This document shows positions 4,620-44,096 of a DNA stretch of 64,000 bases, one piece after another (position 1 is the stretch's first letter; each line of letters begins with the position of its first letter). Source of the stretch: Macrostomum lignano (taxonomy: Eukaryota); NCBI GenBank assembly GCA_002269645.1, contig NIVC01003581.1, positions 1-64,000 on the forward strand, written 5' to 3'. The notes beneath the pieces were generated by a model. It was given only the letters and a program-made list of their open reading frames with translations. It did no database searches and was not told the origin of the DNA. Both the position numbers and the translations under genes were made by a program.

Positions 4620-4638
4620 AATTGTCGCTGGAAAGCAA

Positions 4639-6010
4639 TTATTTTCGACGGAAGATGCGGTTAAGTAACCTCGCCAGGCGAGACGCATAAGTCTTGCGGC
4701 TAGGGTTGACCTGTAACCTATCAGGTTCCCTGCGCAATCGCTCTGGGCGGTTTAGTGTCGCTAGATCGACGTCCCTAGTCCTAGTTGCCTGCCTATCTAT
4801 AGTTGAAATTTCTCCTAGTTGTTGCTCAGGTGCGATGGGGGATGGGAGCGCGGGAGTAGGAGATTCGCGTGGGCTTGGGCTGCGTGACGGCAAATGCGCA
4901 ACCTCAATGGGCGCAAAATCTCCAATCCTCGATTCAGCTCCTTGGTCGACAGCTTCAGCGTTGGCGCCTCGCGATCGCGCTTGCAGCGGCGAGCGCGTCG
5001 ACCTCAGCGCAGCGGCGGCTGCAGCTGGGTGCGCCCAATTCACGTCGACAACGCTCTCGTCTTCGTCCTCGTCGGAGTCCTCGGTGCAGAACTCAGCGTG
5101 GCAGCCTGGCGCTTCGGTAGCAGCCTGTGGCGCCGGATGACAACGCTGTCGGTGCATCGGGTGCGGTGCTTCTTCGACCTGTGGGAGATAGTCGGCAGTG
5201 TGCACGGGGAGCAAATTCTTCCGGTGCACTACAAGCACCTCTTTTCGAGCACGGCGCTTCTCGCCTTGGCGACGGATCTTGTAGACCAGCTCGCCCTTCT
5301 GCTCGATCACCTCATAGACGGCCTTCCGCGGTCTATGGAATTTCGGCGCCTCACCGGCCTCTAGCACTGGATTCGCCAAGAACACTAATTGTCCTGGCTG
5401 CAGCGGATCTACTTGCGGTTTTCCGGCAAAGTGATCTACGCGGAGATCCTGCTGAGCGCGAATTCGCTCTTTTGCTAGGGCGGTCGCCTCACTCAATATA
5501 CTTTCAAATTGGCGCACATAATCTGGCAAATTCTGATAATCAGGTGAGTGGCGCAATGCGTTCTCAATAGGCAAATTGAACGTGCGGCCAAACATCAGAA
5601 AATGCGGGCTGTATCCTGTCACTGAGTGAACAGCCGTGCGCAGCGCTATTAAGCAAGCTGGCAGATAGTGTGCCCAATCTTTGTGCTTTGTCTCTAACAG
5701 ACACGTCAGCACAGACTTAATATTTCGATTCAGGTTCTCAACAAGCCCATTAGATGCAGGATTATATGGACAGGTTACTGTGTGTCTTATCCCATATATT
5801 TTCCAAAAATTATTAAAGGCGGCGCCCGTAAAATTGGTTCCTTGATCAGTATGGAACTGGGCTAGCACACCGTAAATTGGAATGAACTGTTCCTGAATCA
5901 CTTTAATAATTGTCTTGGCCTTCTGATTTCTCAGAGCATAGGCCCACGGATACTTCGACGTCGCGTCACACAAGGTTAGGACATATCTATGGCCTGCAGC
6001 ACTAGGCTGA
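4639..6010 (-). pseudogene. pol: 5'-truncated Gypsy pol: integrase core and C-terminal region (element A)
   Basis: rve motifs YVLTLCDATSKY, FHTDQGTNF, SNGLVENLNR and a GPY/F-like region; RT, RNase H and the HHCC finger are absent; sequence breaks at ~6010. Confidence 0.9.
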
Positions 6011-7209
6011 TTATGCATCATCAACAGTGGCAAAGCATTCGGTCTGCGAAACAGGACAGTGCACGCCTGTTAATCCACTTCCAAGAGCGGCGACAGGTAG
6101 CAGAGCGAGTGACACTGAACTCTCACTTTCCCGAAGCCTTCATGCCAGTCAGCTGGGACACTACGAGGACCTCGTCAAGTCCAAGACGGGGCACTCCTTC
6201 GAGAGCAAAGCGGGTCGTGCCTGCATGCAGATGGCAACATTGCGACACGCATGCGCCATAGATGACCGACTTGGTCGACTCGAGAAAAATTTGCTTCCGC
6301 GACTGATGTCCATGGTCGAGCAGCTTACAACGCAAGTGGCAGCCCTGGAGATTCAGAACCGCCAGCTGCTGCGCAACCGTGGTACTGCTCAGCAGGAGAC
6401 CGAGGATCCGAGGAGGACCAACCTGACTCCTATCGACTCGTGGGCCGAGTACGCCGCCTTCATAACATCTAAGGCCGTACAAGATAGACTCGTGAGTCAA
6501 TTTTTAAATAAATCATGACTTTCTAATTTAACGTAAATGTCTTTCAGTATCCTTAGGGCAGGCTCTGATATCAATATGTTTTTTATTAAATGCGAATATA
6601 TTTTTACATCAGCAAAAGTAAATACCTATATAGATGTTCAAATATAAGCGACGCGGTTAATAAGACAGGTCACTTTAACCTTTACTATTCTGATAGATGC
6701 CACATCTCCGTGGATGTCGCTCTGGAACGGTGCATGACACATTGAAGAGGATGATCGAAAAGTGCCTGTCAACGAAGATGCAGCTTTGTGTCAACTTCAG
6801 CGGGAGAGGAATGCAGCAGCGATCACAGCTGGATTTATCAGATGTGAAACTGGGCTTTCGCAACGCACTGCCACTTTTTCAAGGTAAGTGCAATTGACAT
6901 TAAATATAATCCTTTCTCCAGTCAACTCACAAAAGCTCAGCGCAACTGGAAAGCGTAAAACTCTAAACCTTTCTCCCCTTAGATGCTGTCGCCACGGTCT
7001 ATTCAGACATCACAAAGAGGCCATCCGAGAGGGAGGTCGAGCTAGGGATCATGACAGTCCTGAAGCATGCGGCCGACCGTGAAGCGGCCAAACAAAGGCG
7101 ACGGCAAACGCTTCCTGCTGCTTCAACAGCTGCCTGTGGCGAAGACCAGCCGGCGAGATGCGAGAAGAGGATACGACCTGACAGTTCTTCGGATGAGGAG
7201 AATGTGTAG
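6010..7209 (+). pseudogene. Spliced accessory gene fragment of a CACTA/EnSpm-type transposon (DUF4806-like), 5' end missing
   Basis: Exon pieces give a coiled-coil (LEKNLLPRLMSMVEQLTTQV), then TVHDTLKRMIEKCLSTKMQLCVNFSGRG and EVELGIMTVLKHAADRE, the pattern of animal EnSpm ORF2 proteins; GT-AG introns; domain name is inferred. Confidence 0.55.
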
Positions 7210-8316
7210 ATGGGATTTTAAAACTTTATTTTCTAAAGCCAGAAATTTTTGTATCAAAATTTGTTTGCCTTTTGCTGGTCACTTTAAAATTATTCTAGAA
7301 GCATACCAATATTGCTTAGAGCTGGGTATTAAAGAAGCCTTGAGGGGGGCTCGCAGCTCTATAGGAGGGTTTTGGTTGGCTTACCTCGATAGGAGACTCG
7401 CCCTTGGTGTTGGTAAAGAAGCTGCCCAGAATTGCCCCAAAATTAAGCCTTTTCTGTAGATTTCGGGGTCTCCCCGCTCTCGGACCACTTTAAGTAGTAT
7501 TTCAAACATTTTGCAATCTTTTTTGCGCGCACTTTCAAAAATTTGTCTGCTGGGGGTGGCTTGGGTGGACTCGGTCTTTGCACCGTCCCTGATTCCATTG
7601 TTGGACAGCGGTGTCTTAGTCCATAGGCTTGGGTTAGTAGCTCTAATAAGGTTATTCTCCTGGCCATAAGGCCAGGACCCAATTTGGGCCACTCGGGCTA
7701 TATTCCCCTGGTAGATAGGCCCCCGTTTTCTAGCGGCAGAGCCTTTCCCTGGGCTGATCCGCGGAAGCCCCCTAGGCTACCCACCCTCGTTTAACAACAA
7801 CAAGTAAACAAGTTTACAGTTTTATTAGTGTGTAAACACATCTATTAGAATAGCTTGCTTCTAACGGTTTTAGCTGTAGGTAATATACAAAGGCAAATAA
7901 ACATTTTTTTGCTCTGTGCTATTTGTCGACTCTTCAAAAACTGTGTAAACTGACAAAGTATGATATTGCTATGCGTTTTTAAATTGCGGACATCAGCTTT
8001 ATTTATATTTGTATCGTTTGATGCATATCGCGTGTTTTATCATTCTGATAGCGTATGTGCTATCAGCATGCTAGCTTGTGTACTGCTACTACAATACTGA
8101 TGCTACTAAAATACTGACTATAAAAAAATAAACTCCCAAGACGCAATATTTTTGCCATTTGAGTTGAATTTAGAATATTGTGCTACTATAAAAAATATCA
8201 GTCGCCACTTAGTCGACAGAATCATATGATATCGGACTGCGAAAAGTTGCGTCCTATTAGCGTCCTATTCTAGTCCCATTTCCTTCGACGTCGGATCCGA
8301 TCCGACGTCTTGTCGG

Positions 8317-11131
8317 TCATACATTCGGGTACAGTGGGGACGCCGATTTATCGCCGTCCCATTGACAGATTTTTTTTACTGGGTAAATTGACATGGACTC
8401 GACCATAGGAAAAACAACATATTCCGAATCAACATAAAAGTAGACTGCTTTGTTCGTAGGAACACCAGTAACATAAATGCGAGATTTAACAAAAATGCCA
8501 ATTCCAAGAGCACTAGAATTATAGAGATAGGTATAAAGATCCCTACGGAAAATTAGCTTGATTCCAGAAAGAGAACCATCAGGATAAATAGACTGCACAA
8601 TAACAGGAAAACCATTAATAATCGCAACGTCTGGCTTCGATACAGTAAATCTCAATTTCGAGCGCATCTCGGGTAACTTATGCAAATCTCGCAACGTAAT
8701 CAACTGGTTGAGAGTGTGACGTTGCTAGTTTAAGTGGTCCCGCAAAAGGGCCGTTGGACTATAGTTTCCCTTGCAATTTCTCATTTTAATTTCTCCAATA
8801 GTTTATTTTAACGTTTACTTGTAGTAGCGTGCAAATAATCTGTATCAACTGCTAATTCACTGTGTATTTGGTAGGCCTTGCGCTCGTCTGTGAATTTTGG
8901 CACGATCGATAATTTCAAATTCTCTCGCCAGCCAATGAAAACTCTCCGTGTTTTACGCTACCCCCCCCCCTTTTGCGCTCTTTATTAACCCCCGCCTGGC
9001 GGCGGGCTCCTCACTTCTTCTCCTCTCCTACCTTCTGCCTTCTCTCGCCTTCTGTCTGCCTTCTGCCCCCTCGCTTCGGGCCCCTCACTTCGCGGCTCTT
9101 GTTTTCCTTCTCTCTCTCTCTCTTGGCTGCCTCGAGCCTGCCTTATCTCTCGCCACGGCCCACCCTGTCTGGGCCCGTCTCGCCAGTCAGACCTGTTTAC
9201 GCCTTTCCACTGCCAGTCTATTCTCCTAGTGCCACTGCACCGTTTGCTCACTGCCATCATTCGCCACTTGGGATCACCTTCATCGTGCTCAACCGCCTTC
9301 AACTTAACTCAACTTATTGTTGCGCTGCCGCCAGTGCCCAGTACAGTAGTCCACTATATTGAAACTGTTAACCTTTGTGTAAATCTGACTACTACTCAAA
9401 TAAACAAGCCTACGGCCAACTTGTTGCCGCGATATTGCCAGTGCTACCGCTACAAACCGCCGTGTTGTCTCAACTAGTATTTCCTCGTCACGACAAAACA
9501 CGTGACAGAGAGCATGCGGCATAATTCCTCGGGTGCATCTAATACGATGCTTCAAATTTCCAAGAAACTTTTCGAATTGAAATGCAGAAAAATTAGACCA
9601 TGGGCCATATTGTATTACAAAATCATGAAGGTGAAGGAGCAAATGAGTATTATACGAGACGCACCGCTCATCGAACAAACGGGGAAAATCGGCAACAAAC
9701 ATCTCCAAGCACCTATGCGCATTTGAGTAAAAAATTGAATAGTTATGGGAAGAAAACACATAGTATGCAAAGTGCAAAAGAAGAAAGTGGTTAAAAAACG
9801 ACGCAGACAGATAGCTACCAAGCAAAAACGGCCCAAAATACAAAAGTAAACTACGAAACTCTGTAGCCTTGTAATGAGCAAGATTTAGATCGATGCGTCT
9901 CACGTGACGCTGAAACTCACAAGGTGTAAAGGAGCGGAAAGCAGAAATTTTGTCAGAAAGGTCTTTCACGCTTGCGCGGGTCACGCTACAGGACAAATGA
10001 AGTCCTTTAGTGCAAGAAAAAAAATACGAGCACAATCTACGGACAACACCTAAGCAAACACAATGTTGCTCGTCGATGGGAAAACCTGAGCGCAACGGCG
10101 TTACAGCAATCAAAGGGGATGCAGCTAATTGGTTGTCTTCCTTCACCTGACAGTACAACTCATCGCTTCTAGAAGTCCCAGCACTTCTAGAAAAAACAAC
10201 GCGATCAACATGATAGCGACCCTTGGATCGGCAATAACCACAACCATTCTTAGAAGTATGACCAGAAATGCATTGAACATATGCTCTAGCAGGGGCATCA
10301 CAAATAAAAAATACTTTGCCTAGTTTAACATGAGTTTCTCTAATATAAAAGCCAGTATCGCGCAAATACTTTATTTCTGCGACCAAATCACTCAAAAAAT
10401 GCAAAACATCCGGCTTCTGAACACCATAGTAAATGGCAACAGGAAACGGGCGGCGAATATTATTAAAAGAGACAAGAATTGGCCAAAGAGAAGCCGCAGA
10501 GCTCTTATATAGTGGCAAGTTATCAATATTAAACTTGCAGTCTACAACCAGCGCTTCTTCGGTAGCAGTGATGGGCAGTTGAAGTATTGTATTAGTAATA
10601 CAGAATTGGAGATTATCACGAATAGTCAAATAGGCATACTGTCCATGACCCATGGCAGAAACAGAGGCAAGTGATTTGGACGCTAGTTTTTTTAGTAAAT
10701 GAACAGTTGATGGAATCTTTTGGCAAGAACAAATTCTGCTTAGTAAATTTAGGAGATATTCCATAGAAACTTTGGAAACATTAGAGGGTAAAATAGAAAA
10801 ACAGTTCCTCGGAAAAACTCTTAGACTCGACTTGATCTGATTCTGACTGAGCATCAGATGGGGAAAAATACTCAAAGTCCAGCTCATCGAACTCAACGGA
10901 TTCAGAATTTCCAAAGCCTTCAGTCGCGCCTCCGTCAGATGGTCCACTGTCGGATTGAATCTCAGAAGCAAATGTACAAGAAACATCAGGACTTGTTTCA
11001 TCAGAACCCGGGGTCACCACTAGAGGATTTGTTGCAGCAGCTTGTTCAGCAGGAAAATCAGGAGAATCACTCCGAAGAATAGCGTCCAATTGGCGGTTAA
11101 TAGCACGATAATGAGTACGGCTGTTGCTCAT
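8317..11131 (-). pseudogene. CACTA/EnSpm (CMC) transposase disrupted by a frameshift (~10785) and a solo LTR
   Basis: Motifs FNIDNLPLYKSS..LWPIL, FICDAPAR, CGYC, YKATEFR, HLLLHL..YGPWSNFSAFQFE; C-terminal DLY..SSALGI..VVFP in ORF 8317-8703; removing 8715-9507 plus one TSD copy restores the frame (PHAL|NQLITL). Confidence 0.85.
8715..9507 (+). mobile_element. Solo LTR (793 bp), family unassigned (5-bp TSD fits BEL/Pao, Copia or some Gypsy)
   Basis: TGTGACG...CGTGACA termini, GAGAG TSD at 8710-8714 and 9508-9512; CCAAT (~8931), TATA-like (~8980) and AATAAA (~9398) on the + strand. Confidence 0.85.
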
Positions 11132-14069: not shown

Positions 14070-15087
14070 TGAGGTGGGGGTGGAGAAGATCTTTTCTTGC
14101 ACGGTTGTTTTGAATTTGCAGACACCAGTGAGGTGGGGCGGATTCCTCGTTTGAATTGCCGCCGGCGTTGAGTTCGCACGAATAAAACCGGAAAAACGCG
14201 CAGACGAATCACAACGAAATTTCTTCTCCTGTTGTACTCCGACAGCCGGGTTCTCAAGTCCGGGGGGAGGGTAGTTGCAGTCGTAGCGGAGCGGTCGTGT
14301 AGCGGCGCGGTCGTTCAAAGCGATGAAACACCGGAGATACAGGCACCGTAAATTAATGTGTCGATTTGCTGAGCTTGTTACTTTCAGTAGGGTAGAGCTG
14401 CCACCACCGTAATTTATGTATTACGGAACGAATCAGTCTCTGAGCTTTCTTTGAGCTGAGAAAACTTGGTTATTTAACGCCCCACGGGCAAAAGACTCAA
14501 GATAGGCTATGGCTTAATGTCAACGAATGAATATTAATATACTGGCGGGATATGAATTTTATTTATTGGTTTGAGCAGGATAACTGATAGATTATTTAAT
14601 TATTGACGGAGATGGACTCGGCGTGCCGCGGTGCGACGACTAATTAACTAATAAATTGACCAAAACTTATACAACTAAGATAGGCAAAGACAAACAAAAC
14701 AAGAGAGAGAGAGATAAACGTAAGCGGAGCCGAGAAAAGGTGTTTAAAAACATAAACTCACACATGCTCGTATATAAGCAAAAAATGAGCGAAATCCGCG
14801 GCTGGACCAGAATAAGGAAAATTACACATACGCGTTTGGTCCAGCGGCAGCAAAGTAACAAAAACATACAATTAAGCGTGATACGAAAGGGGGCATACGG
14901 AGGGAAACACTTACACGGGATGGGAATTAAAGAAATCCCATAGCGGGATGGGGTGCGTGATAAACTTTTCGAAAAACTGTCCCGGCTTGGGAAATGTGCA
15001 CTTAACGTGAAACATCAATTTTGAATTTTGAAAGTTTTAAAACTGCAAAAATAAATATTAAAGAAACAGGGGCAGCCACCTGCCACA
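14070..15087 (-). mobile_element. Solo LTR (1018 bp) of the element B/C Gypsy lineage
   Basis: TGAGGTGGGGG...CCTGCCACA termini as in B and C; 4-bp TSD ATAC (14066-14069; the right copy is split by the Mutator insertion: ATA 15088-15090 / C 30859). Confidence 0.85.
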
Positions 15088-15744
15088 ATAATGTATTGGT
15101 TTCCCGACAGACATTCAGACAGACATTCAGAAATCGTTCATTAAATGTTTAACAAAATTGTCTATTTATTACGCAAGATACTGTGAATTTATAGAAACTT
15201 TTACGCATGTCTCTGCTTTAAAAAGACACCTCAGACACACACAAAGACGCTTCACAAGCTGAGATATTCCCTAGCAACTGTTGTTACGACGTTTCCCAAT
15301 ATACCGAATACTGTATATAGTAGTTTTTTGAGAAGCCACTACATCGTCCCACTTTGGTCTTTCTGCATGAAATTTGCACAGCTGTTTTACGCATGTCTCT
15401 GCTTTAAAAAGCTTACGGCTCGACTAAGGAAATAGTTCCGAAGAGATTCAATGTGCTGAGAGCCTTTGCTACCACCGTCTAGCAAGGAAAGAAAATCGCT
15501 CTGCTGCATAGCAACTCCATCTGCTCCGCTAGCAATTGCAGCCAAGTAGCCGTACACAACCTGATAATATTTTTAATACCTTCTACACATTAAATTACGT
15601 ACATACCGTAATGCTATGACGCAAAGCACTTCCTACAAATTTCTTACCGCATAGTCCAGCCAGTTCGTACCATTGAGTGATGCTAATTGCTCTTCTGAAA
15701 TTGGCGTTCCTCTTACATCTCGTACAGCCGAAATTTTTGAGCTG

Positions 15745-16040
15745 GGCGGTTGCTGAGAGTCGCGTGGCAGTTGCTGAGAGTCGCATGGCGGTTGCTGAGA
15801 GTCGCGTGGCAGTTGCTGAGAGTCGCGTGGCGGTTGCTGAGAGTCGCGTGGCGGTTGCTGAGAGTCGCGTGGCGGTTGCTGAGAGTCGCGTGGCGGTTGC
15901 TGAGAGTCGCGTGGCGGTTGCTGAGACTCGCGTGGCGGTTGCTGAGAGTCGCGTGGCGGTTGCTGAGAGTCGCGTGGCGGTTGCTGAGACTCGCGTGGCG
16001 GTTGCTGAGAGTCGCGTGGCGGTTGCTGAGAGTCGAGTGG
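15745..16040 (-). repeat. 21-bp coding minisatellite, 14 copies, encoding (R/L/C)(D/E)SQQ(P/L)P
   Basis: GGCGGTTGCTGAGAGTCGCGT units in frame within ORF 15633-16421. Confidence 0.95.
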
Positions 16041-17980
16041 CGATTTTGGAAACTCACAGGGGGGAGGCTGTGACTTTGTTCGTGGTGTCTGCCTACTGTT
16101 TGAGTATCTGCATCGTTTTTTGCCCCAGCTTTCTTCAGCCCCATCAGCTGTCTCCGCCGCGGCCTTCCTTTTTCGTTGGCAAAATCGTGGTGGAGCAACT
16201 TGCCCAAGTAATTTCGCCTCCTTTATCCTTTCATGACAGAAACTTGCGGTTAATTTCGAGAACTCTGCGACAGAGACGGGTAGCTGAAATTTGGATTTTA
16301 TCCTCTTAAACCAGCTCTCAATGTGAGCATTTGAAAAAGGAGACCACGCGGCTTTCCAAGAATTCATGGTTCCAGACGCAGGCAGCCCATAAGGGAAAGT
16401 AGGAGAGGTATCGGATGACAAACATTTCGACTATTTCCGGTGAATGCAATTCGTTATCGATAGCAACTTCCTCCACTTCCACAGTGCTATTAGCGATTGA
16501 TGTCCTCCATGCATTAAAGTACTCATAAAAGGGCGATCGTTTGTATAATGAACTATTCGTTTCGTCCTCATTAGTACTGTCATTGTCTTCGTGATCTCCT
16601 TCCTCTGACTGTCCGTCTGAGTTGGTCCCTTGCTCATCATCTTTGCTGTTATAGGGTTTGGACATTATACGCTGGCATACTTTCGCAGACTTTGTCAAAA
16701 AAATGTTCATTGCATCCTGAATTGTTGACTTAACTTCTTCTACAACCTTAATAGTCATAACTCTGTAGAAGTATCTCAAAAAAGTGTCCCTGATTCGCTT
16801 TGAATACTTCTTCTGCTTTAGATACCGGCTTACTGAATGCATTAGATGATTTGTACAGAGCATTACCCCGTAACTGTTACAGAAGTGTTGGCTTTTTCGG
16901 AAATAGTGATATTGCATATTTAAATACGTCTCCAAATCGCATTGGTGGAATTCAAAGCAGCTATGTATCAGTGCCCAGGAAAAGTCTGTCACCCATAGGA
17001 TTGGTACGTAGGCTTGCCTAAACCGTGACATCATGTTGACGATATGATGGCGCAGAACACGCAAGAAATGTGCTATTGATGCGACAGAATGTCCGTTTGT
17101 AATGCAGTCTGCTATTGAGACAGATTTCACGCGGTTGGTAGCTGTTGTTACAATAGAGTACAGGAATACGCGTCCGATATAATCCGCTTTTTTAATTATC
17201 GATCCGGTGGCGTTAATATGAAGAACATTAAGCTCATTTTCCTGTATTAGGTCGATTAAATATTGCAGTTGGTAACCAGAGTACAAAACGACACGCAGGG
17301 GATCAGCGCAGCGCTCTCTAACTATTCCCGGCAAGTACTCGTGTGGGTATTCTTCTTGTAGAGCAGTCTGCATAATGAGTAATTCCATATTAACGTCCTT
17401 ATGTAGTAATTTCGCCTCATTTACCTTTTTGGCTATTCTTTCCATTACAAATTTCGATTTGCATGAGTCAAAGTTTTTGCTCAAGACGTGACGCATGTGC
17501 TGATCTTCATTCGACAGCTTTCGATGCGCTCCAGACGCCCCATGCTCTGCGACAAGTTTTGTGAAATTTTCTTCCTCATCCTCTGTTATTCTTCTAAAAG
17601 TTGATGATTCGGCTTTCGAGTGGTCAAAGAGACCTCGTCCGATGACGTGCCACTCCCAGCGTTCTTGCGATTGGGGTTCTTCCTTCATTACAAAAGTAAG
17701 TTCTCTCTTGCACCCATGCATCTTGCACGCAGCCCTTACTGTCCAGAAATTCGTAGATTTTTTTCTAGATTCAACCGCACTAATATGACAGTAACCCCTC
17801 ATGCGCAGGCAACAAGACGATACAGATCTCAATGATTTGCAGAGAGCTTCATTTAGTGCTGGCTTCGAAAAAACATACTTGGAATTATTGATTCGTAAAT
17901 TAATCTTCCTTATAGCGTTAATCGATATTGTCACTGTCGCTGTCACTTCATTCCTTGAGGAGCAGTCCATAACAAGTTGC

Positions 17981-18048
17981 CCTTCAGGAGTCCCTTCAAG
18001 AGTCCCTTCAGGAGTCCCTTCAGGAGTCCCTTCAGGAGTCCCTTCAGG
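17981..18048 (-). repeat. 12-bp coding repeat encoding (EGTP)n
   Basis: CCTTCAGGAGTC x5-6 inside ORF 16318-18282. Confidence 0.9.
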
Positions 18049-18454
18049 ACTTCCGGCTCTCTCATTGTTGGTCGCCTGGCCAGCTGCTGGCTGGGCTTCA
18101 GCATGGCCACTGGTTGGCTGATATTCAGTGGAGCTATGAGGTCTAAAAGAATTGCTGTTCTGTTGGAAACAAGACTCATCTTCATGAGGAGGTTGTCCGG
18201 GCGAACATCGGGTACTACATGTAGATGTGGCTTTCCGAAGCCAATTCCACATAGTCATACGATTTCTCAAGTTATTTCTCATTCCCAGTCGCGAGCATAA
18301 AAACGAGAAAATAGGATCTCGATTTCGGTAATCTTTAGGAATGGAGTGCGCCTTCCTTGCCCGAGAGACGGCATCGTCGATCTGGGAAGTAAGTCAACAG
18401 TAGTAAGCCATAATTTAGCACTCCAAATTACATTGCAAAACCTACATGTACATA

Positions 18455-19361
18455 CAAGGACCACTGTAGAAAAAGGACTCGACACTCACAAACCACGTAA
18501 AAATTTTTGAAGGCTGATTTTCAGTTTGATGCTGCCTCTTCAGATACAGACATTAAGATGATTTTTTGACTACATTAGCAGCTGAATTTTTAAAGAAAAT
18601 TGGCCATTGGCTGACCTTACCACCCAGTTTAGTGATGCTTGCCACTTACAAAGATTTTTGTACTGTCCTCTGATAGTGCAGTGATACGGCTAATGCTTTT
18701 TGTATATTGTATCAGTTTGCATCTCTGCAGCTCACTTCTGTTCTGTTGTGGAATTAACGAACGCAGAAACAAGATAGATAATTATCCGGGCGCTCAGTGG
18801 CACCAAAAGAAGGGCTTGGCCAATAGGAGGGCGGCTCGTATATTTATGCACGCGGGGAAGGAAAGTTCTAGAAAGACCGGGGAAGGAAACTTCTGGAACT
18901 ATGCGTAAACAAGTCCGCGGTGGAAGTTTCTAGAAACGCTGTCCCCGAACTACCCCTACGCCTCGCATGCCTTTGCAATACACAACAACTTCTGCCGGCT
19001 GATTTCTTCTGTGATACATTGTGATAAGAGGTTCTCAGTAAGCAATTATGGCAATTAATTTATGGCAATTATGGCATATTGCACGAGGTGTCTCGTACTT
19101 GAAAATCTTGAAAGTCTAGTGCTTGTAGCCATTTATTGAAAAAAAATTAATAGAAAAAACTACATGTATGCATGTAATTACGTGCACAACATGCATCAAA
19201 AATGATCAGAGCAATAAGCATGAATAAAGCACAAATTTATGTGGTTGCACAAAAATGGCGCACTGGTAGTCAGACACGAAGCCTGCGGAAAATCAGCCTT
19301 CAAAAATTTTTCCGTAGTTCGTGAGTGCCGAGTCCTTCTTCTCGCACTACAGTGGTCCTTG
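18455..19361. mobile_element. 907-bp cassette bounded by inverted repeats (putative non-autonomous hAT-like element) nested in the MULE
   Basis: Perfect 15-bp termini CAAGGACCACTGTAG / CTACAGTGGTCCTTG, with imperfect inverted similarity continuing ~75 bp; 8-bp flanks only 5/8 identical (TGTACATA vs CCTATATA). Confidence 0.55.
18838..18936 (-). promoter_or_regulatory. Cluster of three perfect heat-shock elements with a TATA-like box
   Basis: nGAAnnTTCnnGAAn at 18860-18874, 18885-18899 and 18922-18936; CATAAATA on the minus strand ~12 bp beyond the nearest HSE. Confidence 0.75.
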
Positions 19362-19862
19362 CCTATATAGCCATTCGTAGACGTCAGTCTCTCACAAAGC
19401 CAAAAAAAAGCTTACTTCTTCCTTGGTAGGGAAACTCATTGAGATGGTGACCAGGAACAAAGCCAAAATGCATATTGACAACCTCATGCCGAAAAAAACT
19501 GTCAGATGAATTAAGTACCAAAATATGCTAGTGCTTATTGTACTATTGCCAATATAAGATAGAGATATTGTAGTCAGTAGAGACAATTCATCCATATTGT
19601 CAAAATGAGCTTGTTAGTGAGAAAGATTATATACCAAAACAGGGTGCAGGCATATTCTGTGTTAGGCCTCTTGCGTAATGTACATGGCAAAATGACAACG
19701 AATGTACATAAAGAAAAACTGCCTCCTGTACAGTGTTAATATTGCTGATAGATCTGCCTAAAGAAAAGTGCTTCAGATCGGTAGAAGGCAAATACAAGTA
19801 TAACGTACATTCCATGCCGGTGTCCAAATGCAAGTTAGATATGAGCATGCCTTCAGGCAACC

Positions 19863-20325
19863 GTTGCTAGGGAATATCTCTTATGAATGAAGCTTGTGAA
19901 GCGTCTTTGTGTGTGTCTGAGGTGTCTTTTTAAAGCAGAGACATGCGTAAAACAGCTGTGCAAATTTCATGCAGAAAGACCAAAGTGGGACGATGTAGTG
20001 GCTTCTCAAAAAACTACTATATACAGTATTCGGTATATTGGGAAACGTCGTAACAACAGTTGCTAGGGAATATCTCAGCTTGTGAAGCGTCTTTGTGTGT
20101 GTCTGAGGTGTCTTTTTAAAGCAGAGACATGCGTAAAACAGCTGTGCAAATTTCATGCAGAAAAACCAAAGTGGGACGATGTAGTGGCTTCTCAAAAAAC
20201 TACTATATACAGTATTCGGTATATTGGGAAACGTCGTAACAACAGTTGCTAGGGAATATCTCAGCTTGTGAAGCGTCTTTGTGTGTGTCTGAGGTGTCTT
20301 TTTAAAGCAGAGACATGCGTAAAAG
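19863..20325. repeat. 186-bp tandem repeat array in the MULE right TIR (~2.5 units; ~1.2 units in the left TIR at 15190-15411)
   Basis: GTTGCTAGGGAATATCTC recurs at 19863, 20059 and 20245. Confidence 0.9.
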
Positions 20326-20406
20326 TTTCTATAAATTCACAGTATCTTGCGTAATAAATAGACAATTTTGTTAAACATTTAATGAACGATTTCTGAATGT
20401 CTGTCT

Positions 20407-21459
20407 TGAGGCGGGGGTGGAGGAGATTTTCTTGAAAATTGGGCGGTTTTGAAAATTTGCTGACACCAGTGAGCTGGGCGGATTCCTCGTTTGAATTTCC
20501 GCCGAATGTTGAGTTCGCACGAATAAAACCGGAAAAATCGCGCAGACGAATCTCAACAGGAAAATCTTTCTCCTTTTACTCCGGCTGCCGGGTTCTCAAG
20601 TCCGGGGGGAGGGTAGTCGTAATCGTAGCGGAGCGGTCGTGTAGCGGCGAGGTCGTTCAAATCGATGAAACACTGTAATTGGAGATTCCTGACTCCGTAA
20701 AATAATGCGTCGAATAGCTGAGTTTGCTACTTTCAGTAGGGTAGTTGCTGCCACCACCGTAATTTACGTATTACGGAACGGATAAGTCCCAGAGCTATCT
20801 TTGAGATGAGGACTTGGTTATTTTATGCCCCACGGGCAAATGATTCAATAAAACGCTATGGCTTAATGTCAACGGGTAAATATAGATTAATGTATGGTTA
20901 ATGGTTAACGTTATTATTATTAACTGTAAGCAGGCGAAAGTAAATAATATTATTATTGTCGACGAGGATGATGTTCGCAGGCGGTACCTGGGTGCTGAAT
21001 GCGATCGGGATTTAATACAACTGGGCGCGCTGAATATTAAGTACGAAGGAAAAAACGCGGGCACAGAAGAGGAAGAGAAAGGGAGCGTGAGAAAGAGGGA
21101 GAGAGAGAGAGCAGCAATTACACCAAAAGATAAGGGGTTTAAATAGACCGCAGAAATGGTTCTCACAATGGAGCAACGGCTGGGCTAGGTGGTGGGCACG
21201 CACCATTCACAACATGGATTTTCGCAAAAGTTACCGTAATGAGCGCATTTTAACAAACCTCCAGTATGAGGGCATGCATGAACACCGCGTGGATTAAACG
21301 GTGGACAAACCCGATGGACGAAGTCCAACTCGGGGAAAGGTTGGACTCGAACCACGCTAAGGAAAAAAAAACAGAAACGAAGCATCACGCGGACAGTCAA
21401 AATTAGTCACCGTCACAGGTCCCGTTCACTAAAATCAATAGTGGCATCCGCCTGCCACA
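20407..21459 (-). repeat. 3' LTR of element B
   Basis: Matches 29766-30819 with about 5 substitutions and 1 indel counted by eye; TG...CA termini. Confidence 0.95.
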
Positions 21460-21491
21460 TGCGCGGGGCGGCCGGGGACATGTCGAACAAT

Positions 21492-22246
21492 TCAACAGCC
21501 GCCGCCGTTGCAGCTGTAGCGGCCTCGGGCGGCGGAAATGCGGCCTCCGCGATTGGCTGAGCGAGTCGCACGTTCGGCTCCGTTGGGCTGGGCTGGTGGG
21601 TCAGGCTGAGCATTGGTGGTGGCCCTCGGCGGGCGGGAGGCTGGCGCGGAGCTGGCGAGGCGCGCGTCCCGGCATAGTTGATCTAACATAGCCGGTATCC
21701 GGTGGCATTGGCCTTGGTTGACCAGAAGATTAGTCAGCGTGGCACAGGGCCCAAGTTGTTGGCCAGTCGTCTCTAGGCGTAGGCGATCGCCTAGAAGGGC
21801 CATAGTGGTCTCGATGGCCGTGGTGGCATCGCGCCGGGAGTGTTGCCGGGCCAGCTGACTCCAGGTAAGGCAGTCGTTCAGGAACAACGGCCCGGGCCCA
21901 CTAATGGTTTCCCAAAAGAGGAGCTCGGCGAGCTGGCGGGCCGGTCGCAGCTCCGGAGTTGGGGCCGGAACCTCCCCGTTGGCCGGCGAAGACGGGGGCG
22001 TGTCGGCCCGCTCCTCGAGCAGGCGTACAGCTTCATGAACCACGTCTTCATTCACGGCGACCGCGTCGACGGCTTCTAAAAAAGGATTTAACCAGTGGTC
22101 GATGAGGTCGACCTCCGGACTCGGGGCTGGCGCGGGGGCGGATTCAATCCCGGCGAATTATTAGCGTTTTCCAACATCTCGCGAAACGCCGGTTCGAAGT
22201 CTTCTTGGTTGATTCCCATCATTGGGTCGTCGTGCAGATGGTCCAT
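21492..22246 (-). pseudogene. Accessory ORF of element B between pol and the 3' LTR (frameshifted; unknown function)
   Basis: ATG at 22246 (MDHLHDDPMM...) and an open frame from ~22160 to 21492 (VDLIDHWLNPFLEAV...LCRDARL); no clear env-like transmembrane segment. Confidence 0.45.
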
Positions 22247-23024
22247 GTCCGTCGGGATTAGCACGAGGGGCAAACAAAATAAATAGAGATATATATACAC
22301 AAAATATTTACAAGATAGCTCAGTGGGGTCGCAGTTGAAAAGGAATAAAAATCGCCGATTAGTTTAATTACAAAAGGATCGCAAGGAAGTTTACAATATG
22401 CGACAAACAGAGCCACTTGACTGCCATATATACTCGGAAAAACTGCCCAAGCGGTGAATAAAGGAGATTCACACGCTGGAACAGGGCACCAGTCATCACT
22501 CCGCGTGTACTCTATGGTGAACGCGCACGGAGGAGGGGTGGGTGACCCATAGAGGAGTAATAAAACAGATAGCGAACCGCGGCAAAAGGGGGGGGGTCTA
22601 ACTTAGAATGAAAGGGCGCCTTAAACGGCTCACATCAAATGGGGCGGTTAAAAAAAAGGCTGGTTAGCACACAAACAACAAATAAATTAGTAAAGGAGCA
22701 AAGGCGGGTTCCGTACTAATAATAATGTTATAATAAAGTAGGTTAGCTACCGATATGGCATGCAGAGACTTCATAAGGAGTTACAAGGCAGGGAATACTA
22801 CTGGCACTGGGAGAGGGGGGGAGCCAAAATTAGCGGCCCTCACAATGTTCCCAGGCTCGAAACAAAATCGAACAAAGAGCGGGGGGTCGAGGCCTAGAAC
22901 AGGGGCGCTTGACCTGAGCGGCAAAAGACAGTTTGGCCCTTAGACAGTGGGCTGGCAAACTTAGAAAGAAAATTAAAGATTACCTACAGCTTTAATCGAA
23001 CTGTAAGGTGTACAAATTCGCTGC

Positions 23025-23610
23025 TTTTCTCCTGAAAGCATAAGGAAAAGGAGGGCGCTTCTGCACTTCGGCCGTGTGCGAAGAAGCTTACAGCAAACGG
23101 GGATTTGCAAAAACAGATGAAACGCGAAGTACTGTATCGCATTGAATAAATATTGACGCGTTGAATAAATATCGATAGCATTGGTTAGATGGGAAAATTC
23201 ACAGTACATGAGAACTGAGAGGTTCAGAACGCTGCTTTTAGCCGGAAAGCATAAGGAAAACAGAATTGAACAGCAGAATGAGAAAATTTGTTGCTTTTAT
23301 CCCTCAAGCATAAGGAAAATTACATTGAAATAAAATTGACGCCTGCTTTTATCCGGAAAGCATAAGGAAAATGACACTGCTTTTAACCCTGAAGCATAAG
23401 GAAAATTACATTGAAACGACGCCTGCTTTTATCCGGAAAGCATAAGGGAAATGACACTGCTTTTAACCCTGAAGCATAAGGAAAATTACATTGAAACGAC
23501 GCCTGCTTTTATCCGGAAAGCATAAGGAAATGACACTGCTTTTAACCCTGAAGCATAAGGAAAATTACATTGAAACGACGCCTGCTTTTATCCGGAAAGC
23601 ATAAGGAAAA
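23025..23610. repeat. Array of the TGCTTTTA....(G/A)AAGCATAAGGAAA motif (10 copies; ~80-bp dimeric unit) downstream of pol in element B
   Basis: GCATAAGG at ~23039, 23249, 23308, 23360, 23394, 23440, 23474, 23520, 23553 and 23599. Confidence 0.9.
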
Positions 23611-23741
23611 AAAATGACGAAACGGCAAACTTAAATGGAAAACTAAAATCGGCTTTCAGCACAGAGCAGGTGCAGAGAAAGCTTGCAGCAAAATGAGAAT
23701 TGGAACGCGTTCGCAATTACAACTACTAATAGTAATGCGCA

Positions 23742-26700
23742 TCAGAAGTTAGCAACTTGGCGCAACAGAAAACTCCATACCGGCTCCAGCTCCATACCGA
23801 TGTCAGGCAGATCCGGGTCGCCTTCAGACAGCACTTCCGGATGGCGGAGGCTCGGCTCGAACAATTGGCTGCCGCGCAGGTCAGGCTGGGCTGCGTCTGG
23901 CTGTTCGGGAGCGGGCGGATCGGCTGGGTCGACTTCGCTTTCATCGCTCGACTCGTAGGGCAACATTGGCCGCTCTGTCTGGCGCGGCGGCTCCTGCGGC
24001 CGATCTGCCATCATCTGCGGCACCTTGATGATGTTATTGCGATGAACTAGCATTTCAGCTGGGCGTCCACGTCGGGCTGTTGCAGGCTGGATCCAGTAGG
24101 CTACTTCGCCGACCCTCCTGTTGACCTTGTACATGCTTTTGTACGGCCGGTGAAAATTCGGCAGTTCGCCCAACTCGAGCTTCGGGTTGGCCAGGCAAAC
24201 CAGGTCTCCGGGCTGCAGTTCCACGGGCTTGGGTCGGTTCTCGTAGTACTCTTCACGGCGTTGGATCTCAGCTCGCAATCGCTGTCGCACAATCCTTTCA
24301 GTCTCGGCCAGTCTACGCTGATGCTTTGCGATGTACTCGGGGAGGTCCGGCGATACGTCCAGGCGGTCTAGGGTGTTATCGATCGGATACCGGTAGGGCA
24401 CTCCGTAGATGACGTAATGCGGCGAGAATCCCGTCGTACGATTGACGGCTGATCTTAGAGCTGTCAGAGCGGCTGGCAGCATCTTGTCCCACTGTTGATG
24501 ATCTTCGAGGAGACAAGTGAGCACCTTTTTGATGTTCTTGTTGCACGATTCAGCTTGACCGTTTGCCCAGGGCGAGTATGGCGGCGTCGTTGTCTGCCGG
24601 ATGCCATAGACTTCGCAGAAATGTCGAAACTCGTGCCCTGTGAACTGTTTGCCTTGGTCCGAATGGATCCACGCGGGGATTCCGGTGATCGGGAAGACTT
24701 GCTCTTGCAGGAGAGTTATTATCGTCTTGGCGCGCTGATTCTTCATGGCGAAGGCGAAGGGGTACTTTGACGTCGTGTCGACGTAGGTGAGGATGTACTT
24801 GTTGCCTCGGTCTGTCGGGTCTCCAGTGGGGCCCATGATGTCGATCGCACATCGCCCATAGATTTCGCAAACCGGAAATGATTGTACATGCGCTGGGATG
24901 CGTCGCCGTCCTTTACTCTGAGTGCAGGTCTGGCAGGAAGCGACATAGTCGGACACGGCCTTGGCCAGGGCCGGTCGCCAGAACCTCTCGCGCACCTTTG
25001 CGATGGTGAGATCTCGGCCCATGTGTCCGCAGTAGGGCGAACCATGCAGGTCGGCAAACACTGTGGCGTCGAGACTCTTCGGCAGGACGATCCTCGCATT
25101 GTCCTCCTCGCCAACATCGTCGAGATGGATGACTAATAGTCCGTCGTCTCGGACTTCCAATTGCTCATAGAATGCTAAGAGATTTCGCTCATCTCTTGTT
25201 AGATTTAATCGCTGATTCAGCGGCGGCTTCGGTTGTCGACTTTCAATTAAGTTTATCATCATCGCGATGGCGGAGTCGGCACGCTGATGGGTCTGGAGCT
25301 CCTCACGTGTGACTGGTCTCGGGATGTGATCAGTTAAGTTCAAAGTTTGGCGTCTGTTAGTCGAATTAGTCGGCGCGGCTTCGGCTGTGGCGGCATGGTT
25401 CGGGGTCTGGAGCTCCCTCCGCATAGTCGCTACTCTGGCCGGTTGCCGGGTCGATGAAGAATTTGAGGGCCGATCCTCGTCGGTCATGTCAGCGTCGGCT
25501 TCGTCAGCATTAGATTCGTCAGCAGATGAGAGTGAGTCAGCGGAACTGTCGGTATCAAGGCTGAATCTCACCTTCTTGAACACAGGACGGCGATCGGGTT
25601 GGCAGCGGTCTTCGTTGGCTGCGCTGTGGTCGCTATCCTCGTCGCCTTCAGCTAGTAGCCGGCGGCTCCTTGACGGGCAACATGTCGTGCTGCTAAAGCT
25701 GGTGGGCGACCTCTGTGAGTCCCGATAACGACTGGCAGATAGCCTCGACTTCGTCGCCGGCGGATGCAGCTCTGTCAGCGGCTTGCTGTCGGCTGTCGAT
25801 GTTGCGGGCGGCGTAGTCTCGCCGTTGGACTCAGTTGATTTCGTCGGCGGCTTTCGTCGGTGACGGCGGGTCGGTCGCTTCTTGCTCGGTGGAGGACTAG
25901 GGTGGCTGCTGTCGTGGACCTTCGGCGCCGCTGCGCCAGTTATCGCGGCTGGCTGCTTACTTTGGTCCTCGACGGCGGCCTCTCGCTGAGCCTCCTCCAA
26001 ACATTCAGCGTCGTCCTCAGGCCGTCTTGAGAGGCCGTCGGCGTTTTGGTGCTGACTTGATTTTCGATGCTGGATCTCGAACTCGAATTCGCTGAGGCGC
26101 TGTAGCCATCGTCCGAATATTCCTTCTTGTTGAGTTCGCCTTAGGATCCAGGTTAATGCGGCATGATCGGTTCGGCAGATGAACTTCTTGGCCAGCAGGT
26201 AGAGTCTGAAGTGTCGCATTCCATCTACGACTGCCAAGAGTTCCTGTTTCGTAATCGGATAACGGGCTTCGGCCGGTTTGAGTCGCCGGGAGAAATAGCC
26301 AATTGGGCGCTCGATCCCGTCGGCTTGGCGTTGGCTCAGGCAGGCTCCGATTCTGGTCGCAGAAGCATCCGTGTCCAGGATAAACATTACTTCCGGATCC
26401 TCGCTGAACTGCGGATACGCGAGCACTGATGTCGAAGTCATGGCTGCTTTGAGCTGATCAAACGCGTCTTGCTGGGCTTTTCCCCATAGACAATTGAAAT
26501 TTCTAATCTTCTTTTCCTTGATTAGGTCGTGGAGCGGAGCTGCAAGTTCTGCGTAGCCAGGTACGAATTTAGCATAGTAAGCGCACGTGCAGACAAAACT
26601 CTTAAGCTGTCGGGCTGTTCTTGGTCTTGGCCAGGTTTGAATAGCTTCGATTTTCGCCGGGTCGGTCTGATTCCATCTTTGGTTACTACGTGTCCCAGGT

Positions 26701-28414
26701 AGTTGAGGCTTGCCCGAAATAAATGGCACTTCTTGCCTTTGAACTTTAGATTAGCTTCTTGGACTCTCTTAAATACTTCTTCCATATGCCGTAGGTGGTC
26801 GTTAAATTTCTTAGAATAGACGATTACGTCATCCAGGTAGGCGATAGCACTTTTGTAGGCAATCCCGTTGAGCACAGCGTTCATGAGGCGCATGAAGCTG
26901 GCTGGAGCTGAACTTAACCCCATTGGCATAACATTGTAGGCGAACTGTCCGCGGTGCAGCGTGGCAAAGGCAGTCAGGTCTTGATCTTCCGGACGCAGAG
27001 GAATCTGATAGTAGCCGCTATTCAAATCGAATGTACTAAATAGCTGGCTTCCTTCGAGGCTGGCGAATGCTTCTTGAATATTAGGAATCGGGTACGGAAA
27101 ATACTCGCACTTTTGATTCAGACTCCGGAAATCTTGTACAATTCTTAGGCTGCCGTCCTTCTTCGGGATGATCACCAGCGGGGTGTTGTAGCTAGAGAAA
27201 CTCGGTCGAATCACGCCTTTGGCCAGCAGATCGTCGAGTAACTGGTCCACCTTGGGTAGCAGGTGCGGCGGGATCCTTCGCGTTGGGAGATGCACCGGAT
27301 CTTTGTCCTTCAGTACGATTTTGTGGGTGACCAGATGAGTTCGGCCGAGATCGTGCGGCCCCTGCGAGAAGATGGTCTGGTACTTTCTCAATAGCTCGAT
27401 GACTTGAGCGCGCTGGTCACTGGACAGATCCTCGCTGATATCGATCTCCTTAATCCAAGCATCGGGATCCTCGTCTTGGATTTGATTGACAGAGTCTTCT
27501 GATTTCGGCAGCGGGAAGAAATGTAGCTCGGGCAGTCTGATTGGTCTAGCAATCCCGACTAGGGCATTCGCTCGCACTTTGATGGCTGTAGTGCCACGGT
27601 TGATCATTTCAATAGCGCCTTCTCCATTAGCCATGGAAATCAGGGCAGGCGCGGCGTCCAAGTGCTGCACATCTTCTTCACGACGAGCCGGTTTCAGCGG
27701 CTCGATCACGGCGGGTGTACCCTGGTTTTCTTCTCGTCCTTTGGCTAATTTGATTTTAATTCGGGCAGATGATAACGGCGGCACAGTGGTGCTCTCGGCC
27801 GTGTAGATTCTGCACGTTGTAGCTTCGGTTCGCGTGTAGCGAAGCGGTGCGGCTGTGCCGTCCTTGAAAAACAGCATTCCGGCGGCGAGGTCCAGTGATG
27901 TGCTGTACTTCTCCAGGAACTCGAAGCCCAGAATGTTGTCATGCGATCCTTTCGCTAGCAGAAACTTGACTGTAGGCTCAAAATTACCAATCTTCACTTT
28001 GATAGATAGTTCTCCTGCCATCTGAATTGGCTCACCATTGTAGGTCACGATGCGCTGAAGGCAGGGCTTGATTTGGCCACGCAGGGTCGGGTCGTCAGTA
28101 CATAGGCGGTGCCAGGTGCTGAATCCTAGGACTTCACACTTGGACCCGGTATCAAGCAAGAAAGCAAAATAGCGGCCTTGAATCTCACCAGTTAAAAACG
28201 GATCTCTCCGAGGTCGCTTGGGTGCAGAATTCTGTACAGGTGCGGCGGAGGCTGTCTCAGCAGTGGCCTGCTGAGCGACTAAAGTCCTCGGCGGGGACTT
28301 CAGTACTGGCGCGGCTGCTGGATGGCGCTGCCCCCGATGGCGCGTCCAGCCGTCCCGTTTCCCGAGCTGCCGTTGCGCTGAGACGCGGTGCTGGCCGACC
28401 GCCGGTGCGGGCAC
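23742..28414 (-). pseudogene. pol: Gypsy pol polyprotein (PR-RT-RNase H-long linker-IN) with one frameshift at ~26670
   Basis: LLDTGS protease, YLDD RT, LDTDAS..ELLAVV..TDH RNase H, H..H..CQTC, AIDIMGP/HSDQG/NGQAES integrase; element C reads IKTN-AKIE across the break, which implies a 1-nt loss in B. Confidence 0.95.
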
Positions 28415-28495
28415 TCATCGGCACGATGCTCGCGATTGCACCTGTAACACATGGCATTCTGCCGTCGCAACTGGTAAGGCGGCGGCCTTGAACTC

Positions 28496-28527
<32 letters not shown>

Positions 28528-29694
28528 ACGTTGACCTCCTGCTGGCGGCGTTCTCGGCGGAGGGTTGCTGCCGTCTCGTGGTTGCTGAAGTCGATGGAAC
28601 GGTTGCTGTGGCACCATTTGCGTGCCGGGTGTCGTAAATTGGGCGCTTCCGTCGGCGCTGCGGCGAGGAGTCGAGGGTACCAGACATCTGGAGCGTTGGC
28701 CCCACGGGTCCCGCGGCTGGTGGCGAGGCTCCAATGGCTCCGGGGTGTCGTTGTCGCGCGATCCCCGTGAGTAGAATTCTCGCATCTCGTTACTCAATGT
28801 CTCCAGTAGGCGTCGCTGCTCCTGCAGAGTTTCGGCTTGTTGTTCCATCACTTCACGCAACCAGTTCTCCTCGGGCCGAGATGACTTGTCGTGTTGCACC
28901 ACAGTGGGCGTCTGACCATTGTCATCTTCGAGGACCCGGACATGTCTCGCTGCTGGCGGCGGTGCTACTCGCTGAGCCAGACTAGCTGCTGTCTCCAAGC
29001 GTAGCACGGCCCGTCTCGCTGCGGTCAGATTCTGCGGTCGCACCAGGATTAGCTGTTCTCTCGCCGACTGAGCAATCCGCACTCCCACTGTGAACTGATC
29101 AACCAGTTCAGCCTGCTTCTGAACCGGGGTAAAATGCGGAAATGCTCTATCGGCCAGAGCAATTAGTCGATCGCCATAGTCGTCAACGCTCTCGTTCTTG
29201 CCTTGCTGGCAGCTTCGGAACTGCTCCCGGTACTCCAGCGTGTCGGCCACATGCGTAAAACGTTCAGACAATCGCTGTTTGAACTCACCAAACGTTAGAT
29301 TGTCTGGCAGCTCCATCCTGACGACTGCGGGATAGGTGGTGGCGATATCCAGATTCACGAGGACCTCCGCCTTCTTGCGTCTGTCGTCTGTGATCCCGTT
29401 GAGCTCGCAACGCTCCTCCAGAGCCTGGATCCAGACGTCGAATTCCTGGTTCTGCGTATACCGCTGAATCTTGACCGGTTTCGGCGCTGGAGCTCGATCC
29501 TGCTGCTGGGGCTGCTGGTACACATGGTGATGGTGTTGCGGCTGGCCCAGGCTGGTCTGCTCCAGTCGCCGGCGCACCTCTTCGGTCACCGCGCGAATCA
29601 TCTCGTCGTAGGTCGGTCTTGTCGTTGAGTTGTCGGGGCCCGCGGCGTCGGCTGTCGCGTCCGCGGTCGTTGAATTAGTATTAGTTGAAGCCAT
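28300..29694 (-). CDS. gag: Gypsy Gag (464 aa) with poly-Q tract and CX2CX3HX4C zinc knuckle
   Basis: ATG ~50 nt after the PBS; capsid-like FDVWIQALEERC...ESVDDYGDRL..QFTVGV; CYRCNREHRADEC. Confidence 0.92.
28317..28363 (-). promoter_or_regulatory. -1 ribosomal frameshift signal between gag and pol
   Basis: G GGA AAC heptamer (28357-28363) in the gag frame, with pol in the -1 frame; GCTGGA/TCCAGC stem 6 nt downstream; conserved in element C (43906-43912). Confidence 0.8.
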
Positions 29695-29743
29695 AGTAGT
29701 GTAGCGTTTGAACGACTCGTTGAAAGGGTTTTGGCGTCTCGTT

Positions 29744-29764
29744 ATCCCACTTAGCTGACCACCA
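29744..29764 (-). promoter_or_regulatory. Imperfect tRNA-Leu(CAA/CAG)-type PBS of element B
   Basis: TGGTGGTCAGCTAAGTGGGAT, 1 nt after the LTR CA; compare canonical TGGTGTCAGAAGTGGGAT. Confidence 0.75.
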
Positions 29765-29765
29765 A

Positions 29766-30819
29766 TGAGGCAGGGGTGGAGGAGATTTTCTTGGAAATTG
29801 GGCGGTTTTGAAAATTTGCTGACACCAGTGAGCTGGGCGGATTCCTCGTTTGAATTTCCGCCGAATGTTGAGTTCGCACGAATAAAACCGGAAAAATCGC
29901 GCAGACGAATCTCAACAGGAAAATCTTTCTCCTTTTACTCCGGCTGCCGGGTTCTCAAGTCCGGGGGGAGGGTAGTCGTAATCGTAGCGAAGCGGTCGTG
30001 TAGCGGCGAGGTCGTTCAAATCGATGAAACACTGTAATTGGAGATTCCTGACTCCGTAAAATAATGCGTCGAATAGCTGAGTTTGCTACTTTCAGTAGGG
30101 TAGTTGCTGCCACCACCGTAATTTACGTATTACGGAACGGATAAGTCCCAGAGCTATCTTTGAGATGAGGACTTGGTTATTTTATGCTCCACGGGCAAAT
30201 GATTCAATAAAACGCTATGGCTTAATGTCAACGGGTAAATATAGATTAATGTATGGTTAATGGTTAACGTTATTATTATTAACTGTAAGCAGGCGAAAGT
30301 AAATAATATTATTATTGTCGACGAGGATGATGTTCGCAGGCGGTACCTGGGTGCTGAATGCGATCGGGATTTAATACAACTGGGCGCGCTGAATATTAAG
30401 TACGAAGGAAAAAACGCGGGCACAGAAGAGGAAGAGAAAGGGAGCGGGAGAAAGAGGGAGAGAGAGAGAGCAGCAATTACACCAAAAGATAAGGGGTTTA
30501 AATAGACCGCAGAAATGGTTCTCACAATGGAGCAACGGCTGGGCTAGGTGGTGGGCACGCACCATTCACAACATGGATTTTCGCAAAAGTTACCGTAATG
30601 AGCGCATTTTAACAAACCTCCAGTATGAGGGCATGCATGAACACCGCGTGGATTAAACGGTGGACAAACCCGATGGACGAAGTCCAACTCGGGGAAAGGT
30701 TGGACTCGAACCACGCTAAGGAAAAAAAAAACAGAAACGAAGCATCACGCGGACAGTCAAAATTAGTCACCGTCACAGGTCCCGTTCACTAAAATCAATA
30801 GTGGCATCCGCCTGCCACA
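29766..30819 (-). repeat. 5' LTR of element B
   Basis: Direct repeat of 20407-21459; adjacent PBS and TSD. Confidence 0.95.
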
Positions 30820-43731: not shown

Positions 43732-44096
43732 CAGTTAGAACGGATTCCTTTGGGGTCACTTAGGTGCAGAGTTCTGTATAGGTGCAGTGGAGGCGGTCTC
43801 AGCAGTGGCCTGCTGAGCGACTAAAGTCCTCGGCAAGGACCTTAGTGCTGGCTCGACTGCTGGATGGCGCTGCCCCCGTTGGCACATCCCACATCCAGCC
43901 GTCCCGTTTCCCGAGCTGCCGTTGCGCTGGGGCGCGGTGCTGGCCGACCGCCAGTGCGGGCACTCATCGGTGCGGTCACTCATTGGCGCGGTGCTCGCGA
44001 TTGCACCTGTAACACATAGCGCTCTGTCGCCGCAGCTGATAGGGCGGCGGGTGTGAACCCAACTGTTGCTGCCGCTGTGGCTGCTGCTGCTGCTGT

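Follow-up and report, generated by a model that had tools for sequence, protein, structure and literature searches.

The 64-kb stretch of Macrostomum lignano DNA analysed here (the window) contains a group of HSEs and a TATA box within the bounds of a Mutator-like DNA transposon, and raises the question of whether a cut-and-paste transposon of an animal possesses a heat-shock promoter of its own. The initial annotation had described it as a stress-inducible promoter in an animal DNA transposon, and as one of the strongest candidates for an undescribed system. In minus-strand order, the elements of the candidate promoter are these.

18923-18935, minus strand: HSE3, distal, a perfect three-unit HSE (motif match)
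18886-18898, minus strand: HSE2, a perfect three-unit HSE in a 25-bp duplicated unit (motif match)
18861-18873, minus strand: HSE1, proximal, a perfect three-unit HSE in a 25-bp duplicated unit (motif match)
18839-18848, minus strand: TATA box CATAAATATA (read from the sequence)

Perfect GAAnnTTCnnGAA elements number three in the window, all inside 18861-18935, and the same three intervals (18861-18873, 18886-18898 and 18923-18935) are the only exact matches on either strand to the pattern GAANNTTCNNGAA, of which about 0.6-0.9 are expected by chance in 64 kb. Block-wise shuffling of the window (n=3000) gave a mean of 0.57 such matches per 64 kb, with two matches lying at most 100 bp apart in 31 of the 3000 shuffles and three in a single one. 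The clustering of three perfect three-pentamer HSEs is thereby borne out, as are the other particulars of layout given in the initial annotation. The 25-bp tandem duplication said to carry two of the HSEs holds HSE1 and HSE2, with 20 of 29 positions identical at offset 25 and 7-13 at neighbouring offsets; the TATA box placed about 12 bp downstream on the minus strand is CATAAATATA, 11 nt after HSE1; and the transposase ORF placed about 550 nt further on the same strand has its ATG (18282) about 560 nt beyond CATAAATATA.

An HSF-responsive promoter is characterized by at least three contiguous inverted nGAAn units, set a short way ahead of a core promoter and in a single orientation. Here there are three separate perfect trimers, and they precede the TATA box closely on the minus strand, from which a transcription start would be expected about 30 nt past the TATA box, near 18815. 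A plus-strand promoter made up of CCAAT, GGGCGG and TATATTTAT was considered and rejected, as its elements are too closely spaced, its start would lie upstream of the HSEs, and the published orientation of the LTR described below also rules it out; direct reading of the window sequence showed no TATA-like box after the HSEs in the plus direction. A scan of viral_contigs for the HSE1-HSE2 block gave no match.

The answer to the question of ownership comes from the limits of the block in which these motifs are set.

18739-18987, minus strand: solo LTR of 249 bp, TGTTGTG...CAGAACA, assigned to Mlig_LTR-RT_ID206 (Ty3/gypsy, Mag) by BLAST and MAFFT, end to end against the KU60 LTR
18988-18992, minus strand: upstream copy of the 5-bp TSD of the LTR, GAAGT in the minus-strand reading
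18734-18738, minus strand: downstream copy of the 5-bp TSD, GAAGT

LTRs are delimited by TG...CA termini and a short TSD of 4-6 bp, and the block has both, with GAAGT on either side; in silico removal of the LTR rebuilds an empty site reading ...GGCAGAAGTGAGCTG.... KU60 is a plasmid with an LTR cloned from Mlig_LTR-RT_ID206|Mag, whose sequence is given in a preprint supplement (Ustyantsev et al., bioRxiv 10.1101/2024.12.18.629116; Mobile DNA 2025;17:3, PMC12801592). Positions 18987-18739 of the window align with this cloned LTR from first base to last over 248-249 nt, by both BLAST and MAFFT, at an identity of about 96-99%, which is approximate as the reference is machine-read PDF text with obvious reading errors. 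Two such transcriptions were used, mutually discordant at the reading errors; the identity against them is about 96%, and only three positions differ from the window consistently, in both of them. The three HSEs, the 25-bp duplicated unit, the TATA box and the CCAAT and GC motifs are common to the window LTR and the KU60 LTR, and the two to three canonical HSEs before a TATA box that mark LTRs of the family are represented by three HSEs followed by CATAAATATA. By all the tests available here, the HSE/TATA block is a copy of the LTR of this family. Repeat analysis found no second copy of the 249-bp LTR in the 64-kb window, and no Mag-type internal or other retrotransposon coding sequence was found beside it, so it is read as a solo LTR with its TSD.

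The description of a stress-inducible promoter in an animal DNA transposon is thus correct in one respect, as there is a heat-shock promoter within the transposon bounds that is aimed at the transposase ORF, but the promoter is not the transposon's own; it forms a separate unit, a solo LTR of 249 bp that has TG...CA ends and a 5-bp TSD to itself.

We infer from shared attributes that ID206 of the preprint is the element published as Mlig-id115|Mag, since both belong to the Mag clade, have 19 copies and three HSEs, and are associated with KU60 and line NL52. After 2 h at 37 C, no LTR retrotransposon of Macrostomum lignano is induced more strongly than Mlig-id115|Mag (PMC12801592); its induction is roughly 250-fold or greater, and a response can be detected after 5-15 min (Ustyantsev et al., PMC12801592). 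The family numbers 19 copies with a minimum of two, a median of three and a maximum of three HSEs per LTR; the isolated LTR drives mScarlet-I expression in transgenic line NL52 after 37 C, and a synthetic LTR with mutated HSEs loses the heat response (Ustyantsev et al.). The evidence for the family comprises RNA-seq, qRT-PCR, a reporter transgene and the mutated HSEs, and the authors themselves state that direct binding of HSF to the LTR was not shown (Ustyantsev et al.). A putative TATA box is marked in the supplementary figure legend for the cloned LTR, and in KU60 the reporter ATG is joined directly to the last LTR base (10.1101/2024.12.18.629116), so that transcription of the reporter demonstrably begins within the LTR and continues past its end. 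The heat-shock RNA-seq, HSE-mutation reporter and family survey proposed in the initial annotation are accordingly already published for the LTR family, and the idea of an undescribed system falls with them, as the family and its HSE-dependent heat induction had been described. Only the location of this LTR copy is new; the promoter, the HSEs and the heat induction are already known. What the window copy shares with Mlig-id115|Mag (as ID206) is the whole 249-bp LTR sequence and the host genus, and it differs in being solo and in lying in a Mutator-like transposon, upstream of and co-oriented with a transposase ORF.

The element that surrounds the LTR is itself interrupted, and its limits become clear once a second, unrelated insertion is taken out.

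15091-20406, minus strand: main body of the Mutator-like DNA transposon, with the left TIR starting at 15091 and the right TIR cut at 20406 (repeat analysis)
30824-30849, minus strand: outer 26 bp of the right TIR, displaced by a nested Gypsy element (comparison of the rebuilt ends)
15082-15090 on the left and 30850-30858 on the right: 9-bp TSD GCCACAATA of the DNA transposon (sequence)
20407-30819, minus strand: full-length Ty3/gypsy element nested in the right TIR, with LTRs of 1054 bp that are 99.4% identical and a TSD of GTCT

With the Gypsy element removed in silico, the two ends of the transposon agree at 53 of 53 positions, and the TIRs, of about 320 bp and including 186-bp subterminal tandem repeats, are identical. 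The Mutator superfamily has TSDs of 8-11 bp, typically 9 bp. Both the perfect 9-bp GCCACAATA and the long TIRs agree with Mutator, in contrast to the 8-bp TSD of Zisupton. The nested Gypsy element encodes gag, protease-RT and RNaseH-integrase ORFs on the minus strand, its pol has its best matches among Macrostomum lignano proteins at 83-84% identity, and it is unrelated to the HSE-bearing LTR; no HSE was found in it (20407-30819). It also has 80-bp tandem repeats at 23289-23610. An older LTR-like repeat at 14070-15087 resembles the nested Gypsy LTR, with about 83% identity over the first 480 bp of that LTR, and likewise ends ...CCTGCCACA; the DNA transposon was inserted 3 bp past this end.

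The solo LTR is enclosed more immediately by an inverted repeat, which delimits a MITE-like unit at 18455-19361.

18455-18522: one inverted-repeat arm enclosing the solo LTR, the arms being 85-91% complementary
19288-19361: the other arm of the same unit, the arms being 68-74 bp long and 85-91% complementary

As this repeat encloses the LTR, the LTR element seems to have inserted into a MITE-like unit that the transposon already contained. A search for a TSD around the inner inverted repeat (18455-19361) found no clear one.

The transposase is divided between two reading frames.

16318-18282, minus strand: transposase ORF in the first frame, 654 aa, with a putative N-terminal zinc finger of WRKY-like fold, the first two D motifs of a putative catalytic core and a C(2)H motif
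15633-16403, minus strand: continuation of the transposase in another frame, with ..SNAHIESWF.., the putative catalytic E motif

A frameshift near 16375-16400, in the stretch 16330-16440 of the minus strand, separates ..FPLWAACV.. from ..SNAHIESWF.., just before the catalytic E, and could be either a real defect or an assembly error. The ORF stops at 15633, without the Ulp1/PHD part present in a relative (P0001). As an initial homology search was swamped by a GTPE low-complexity repeat, the search was redone with the repeat-free core, which as a query gave four relatives at 24-27% identity; the 1.84-billion-protein library holds 661 relatives, all distant and at most 44% identical to the transposase, with none at 50% identity or above. 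A scan of metagenome_contigs for close relatives of the transposase gave no match. Many of the relatives bear PHD, Ulp1 (C48), OTU or YqaJ domains. A Pfam scan of the transposase ORFs at E <= 0.01 and at E <= 10 returned no match, none of the 47 aligned relatives matches the Pfam MULE, Transposase_mut or DBD_Tnp_Mut models, and a PDB sequence-profile search with the transposase gave no meaningful match. The motifs DATGS, TDFSWALI, CxAH and N..VENWF are conserved in the 47-sequence alignment, and an AF2 model of the transposase (pLDDT 84) gives weak fold matches, all at E > 0.001, to the P element transposase (prob 0.84), Hermes (0.77) and WRKY domains (0.94-0.95). On the strength of the 9-bp TSD, the long inverted repeats, the conserved motifs and the weak fold matches, the label "Mutator-like" is reasonable but not proven, given that the Mutator Pfam profiles are not matched. 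In-frame tandem repeats occur in the transposase ORFs at 15661-16115 and 17968-18063 (21 bp x 15, PRDSQQP, and 12 bp x 6, GTPE). On a 2-Mb ENA contig (L002), an OTU cysteine protease gene at 7445-8710 adjoins a distant transposase relative (P0007), paralleling the Ulp1 fused to P0001, and these two cases indicate that protease modules recur in the transposase family.

The block is therefore very probably a solo LTR of ID206 (taken as Mlig-id115), generated by insertion and LTR-LTR recombination and nested in a MITE-like unit within a Mutator-like element. In the proposed history, a full Mag element would have inserted and duplicated the 5 bp GAAGT, and later recombination between its LTRs would have left the single LTR. 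This LTR is taken to be an HSF-type heat-shock promoter, whose three trimeric HSEs are followed after 11 nt by a TATA box and whose start would lie within the LTR, so that heat stress might give rise to transcripts that begin near 18815, run through 18738-18283 (about 460 nt) and enter the transposase ORF. The stretch 18738-18283 has two upstream ATGs (18721 and 18374), and a GTAAGT...AG intron at 18649-18382 is possible. Heat-induced read-out of this LTR copy into the transposase ORF is thus plausible, and its transposase product is most likely non-functional, since the ORF is frameshifted before the catalytic E and has none of the C-terminal domains of its relatives. The LTR copy could also be silenced inside the nest of TEs. 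The shared orientation of LTR and transposase is most simply a matter of chance, at 1 in 2.

A more consequential history would be that the LTR entered an ancestor of the transposon lineage and that the solo LTR now travels along as a working heat-inducible promoter. The LTR and the ORF share an orientation at a suitable distance from the ATG, the LTR is able to drive a downstream ORF, and the identical TIRs indicate that this transposon copy moved recently. We nevertheless consider such co-option unlikely. An identity of about 99% with a family that is active at present, an approximate figure that depends on the machine-read reference, marks the LTR as young; the transposase of the window is defective; and the surroundings are a TE nest, where random nesting is expected. 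Searches for a family in which a travelling promoter might be traced gave no transposase relative at 50% identity or more among 1.84 billion proteins, and no second copy of the transposon.

An HSE array native to the DNA transposon, evolved or kept as a promoter for a heat-inducible transposase as in Helitron1_CE, is very improbable. The array does lie within the bounds of the transposon, ahead of the transposase ORF and pointing the same way, and there is precedent in Helitron1_CE and other HSE-rich Helitrons of Caenorhabditis, animal DNA transposons in which HSEs precede the transposase gene and the transposase is heat-induced via HSF-1 (Garrigues et al., eLife 2019, PMC6927752). Their existence also means that HSE-bearing animal DNA transposons were known before, which removes a further part of the novelty first attached to this locus. 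In the Helitrons, however, the HSEs are intrinsic to the element's own sequence and often form arrays of tens, whereas those of the window belong to a foreign nested LTR, and the host here is a cut-and-paste Mutator-like element rather than a Helitron. A block with its own TG...CA termini, a 5-bp TSD and a full-length match to a retrotransposon LTR does not fit a promoter native to the transposon; nor, as a weak argument, do the loci of three transposase relatives (L001-L003), which have no HSEs, since these relatives are distant and only 445 nt upstream are covered in L001. The ORF that such a promoter would serve is, moreover, frameshifted and truncated.

That the Mutator-like element took up a piece of a host hsp promoter, in the manner of a Pack-MULE, is scarcely tenable. 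MULEs do capture host fragments, Pack-TIR elements have been reported in animals (PMC8277862), and the architecture is like that of an hsp70 or hsp20 promoter, but the limits of the fragment are exactly the LTR termini, its 5-bp TSD is of integrase type, and its full-length match is to an LTR retrotransposon and not to a host gene. A Pack-MULE would contain a host-gene fragment lacking insertion hallmarks of its own, and what is found is a complete LTR with its own TSD. Chance clustering of functionless HSE-like words, for which only the short length of the motif speaks, has a negligible likelihood, as the sequence equals an experimentally validated promoter and the single shuffle in 3000 noted above is all that reproduced three matches within 100 bp.

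With the solo LTR retained as the preferred reading, the locus can be set beside known systems. Solo LTRs can act as alternative promoters of neighbouring genes. In such cases the single LTR keeps its promoter and can read into the flanking DNA; the difference here is that the flanking "gene" is the defective transposase of another transposon, into which read-out would be plausible. Among the solo LTRs of the strongly induced families of the worm, only two lie less than 2 kb from (mildly) induced host genes (Ustyantsev et al.). ONSEN (ATCOPIA78), from Arabidopsis and other Brassicaceae, is likewise a heat-activated element whose LTR promoter has HSEs bound by heat-shock factors, and new ONSEN insertions make neighbouring genes heat-responsive. 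It differs in being a plant Ty1/copia element whose HSEs were gained independently, by convergence, and it has no sequence relationship to the LTR of the window.

The finding by itself adds little, being a known promoter in a new place, and the remaining interest, which is low, lies in a possible co-option of the LTR by the transposon family. If co-option were true, heat stress would be coupled to a cut-and-paste transposase through a retrotransposon-derived promoter, and one mobile element would be hijacking the hijacked stress switch of another. The locus is a worked example of a dispersed solo heat-activated LTR placed where a neighbour, in this case the transposase of another transposon, could gain heat responsiveness, and it recommends that nested insertions be checked before regulatory motifs inside a transposon are credited to that transposon. 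It also yields a clear structural outline of a Mutator-like family that is poorly catalogued and has no Pfam model, and whose relatives carry PHD, Ulp1 and OTU domains.

No host gene is evident in the 64-kb window, all of which is a nest of transposons. Further mobile-element ORFs lie at 33989-35800, 39807-47287, 3666-6033 and 56990-58360, and comprise a hAT-like element (DUF4371 and a Spin-doc zinc finger), a second RT/RNaseH/integrase element, an integrase fragment and DUF7486.
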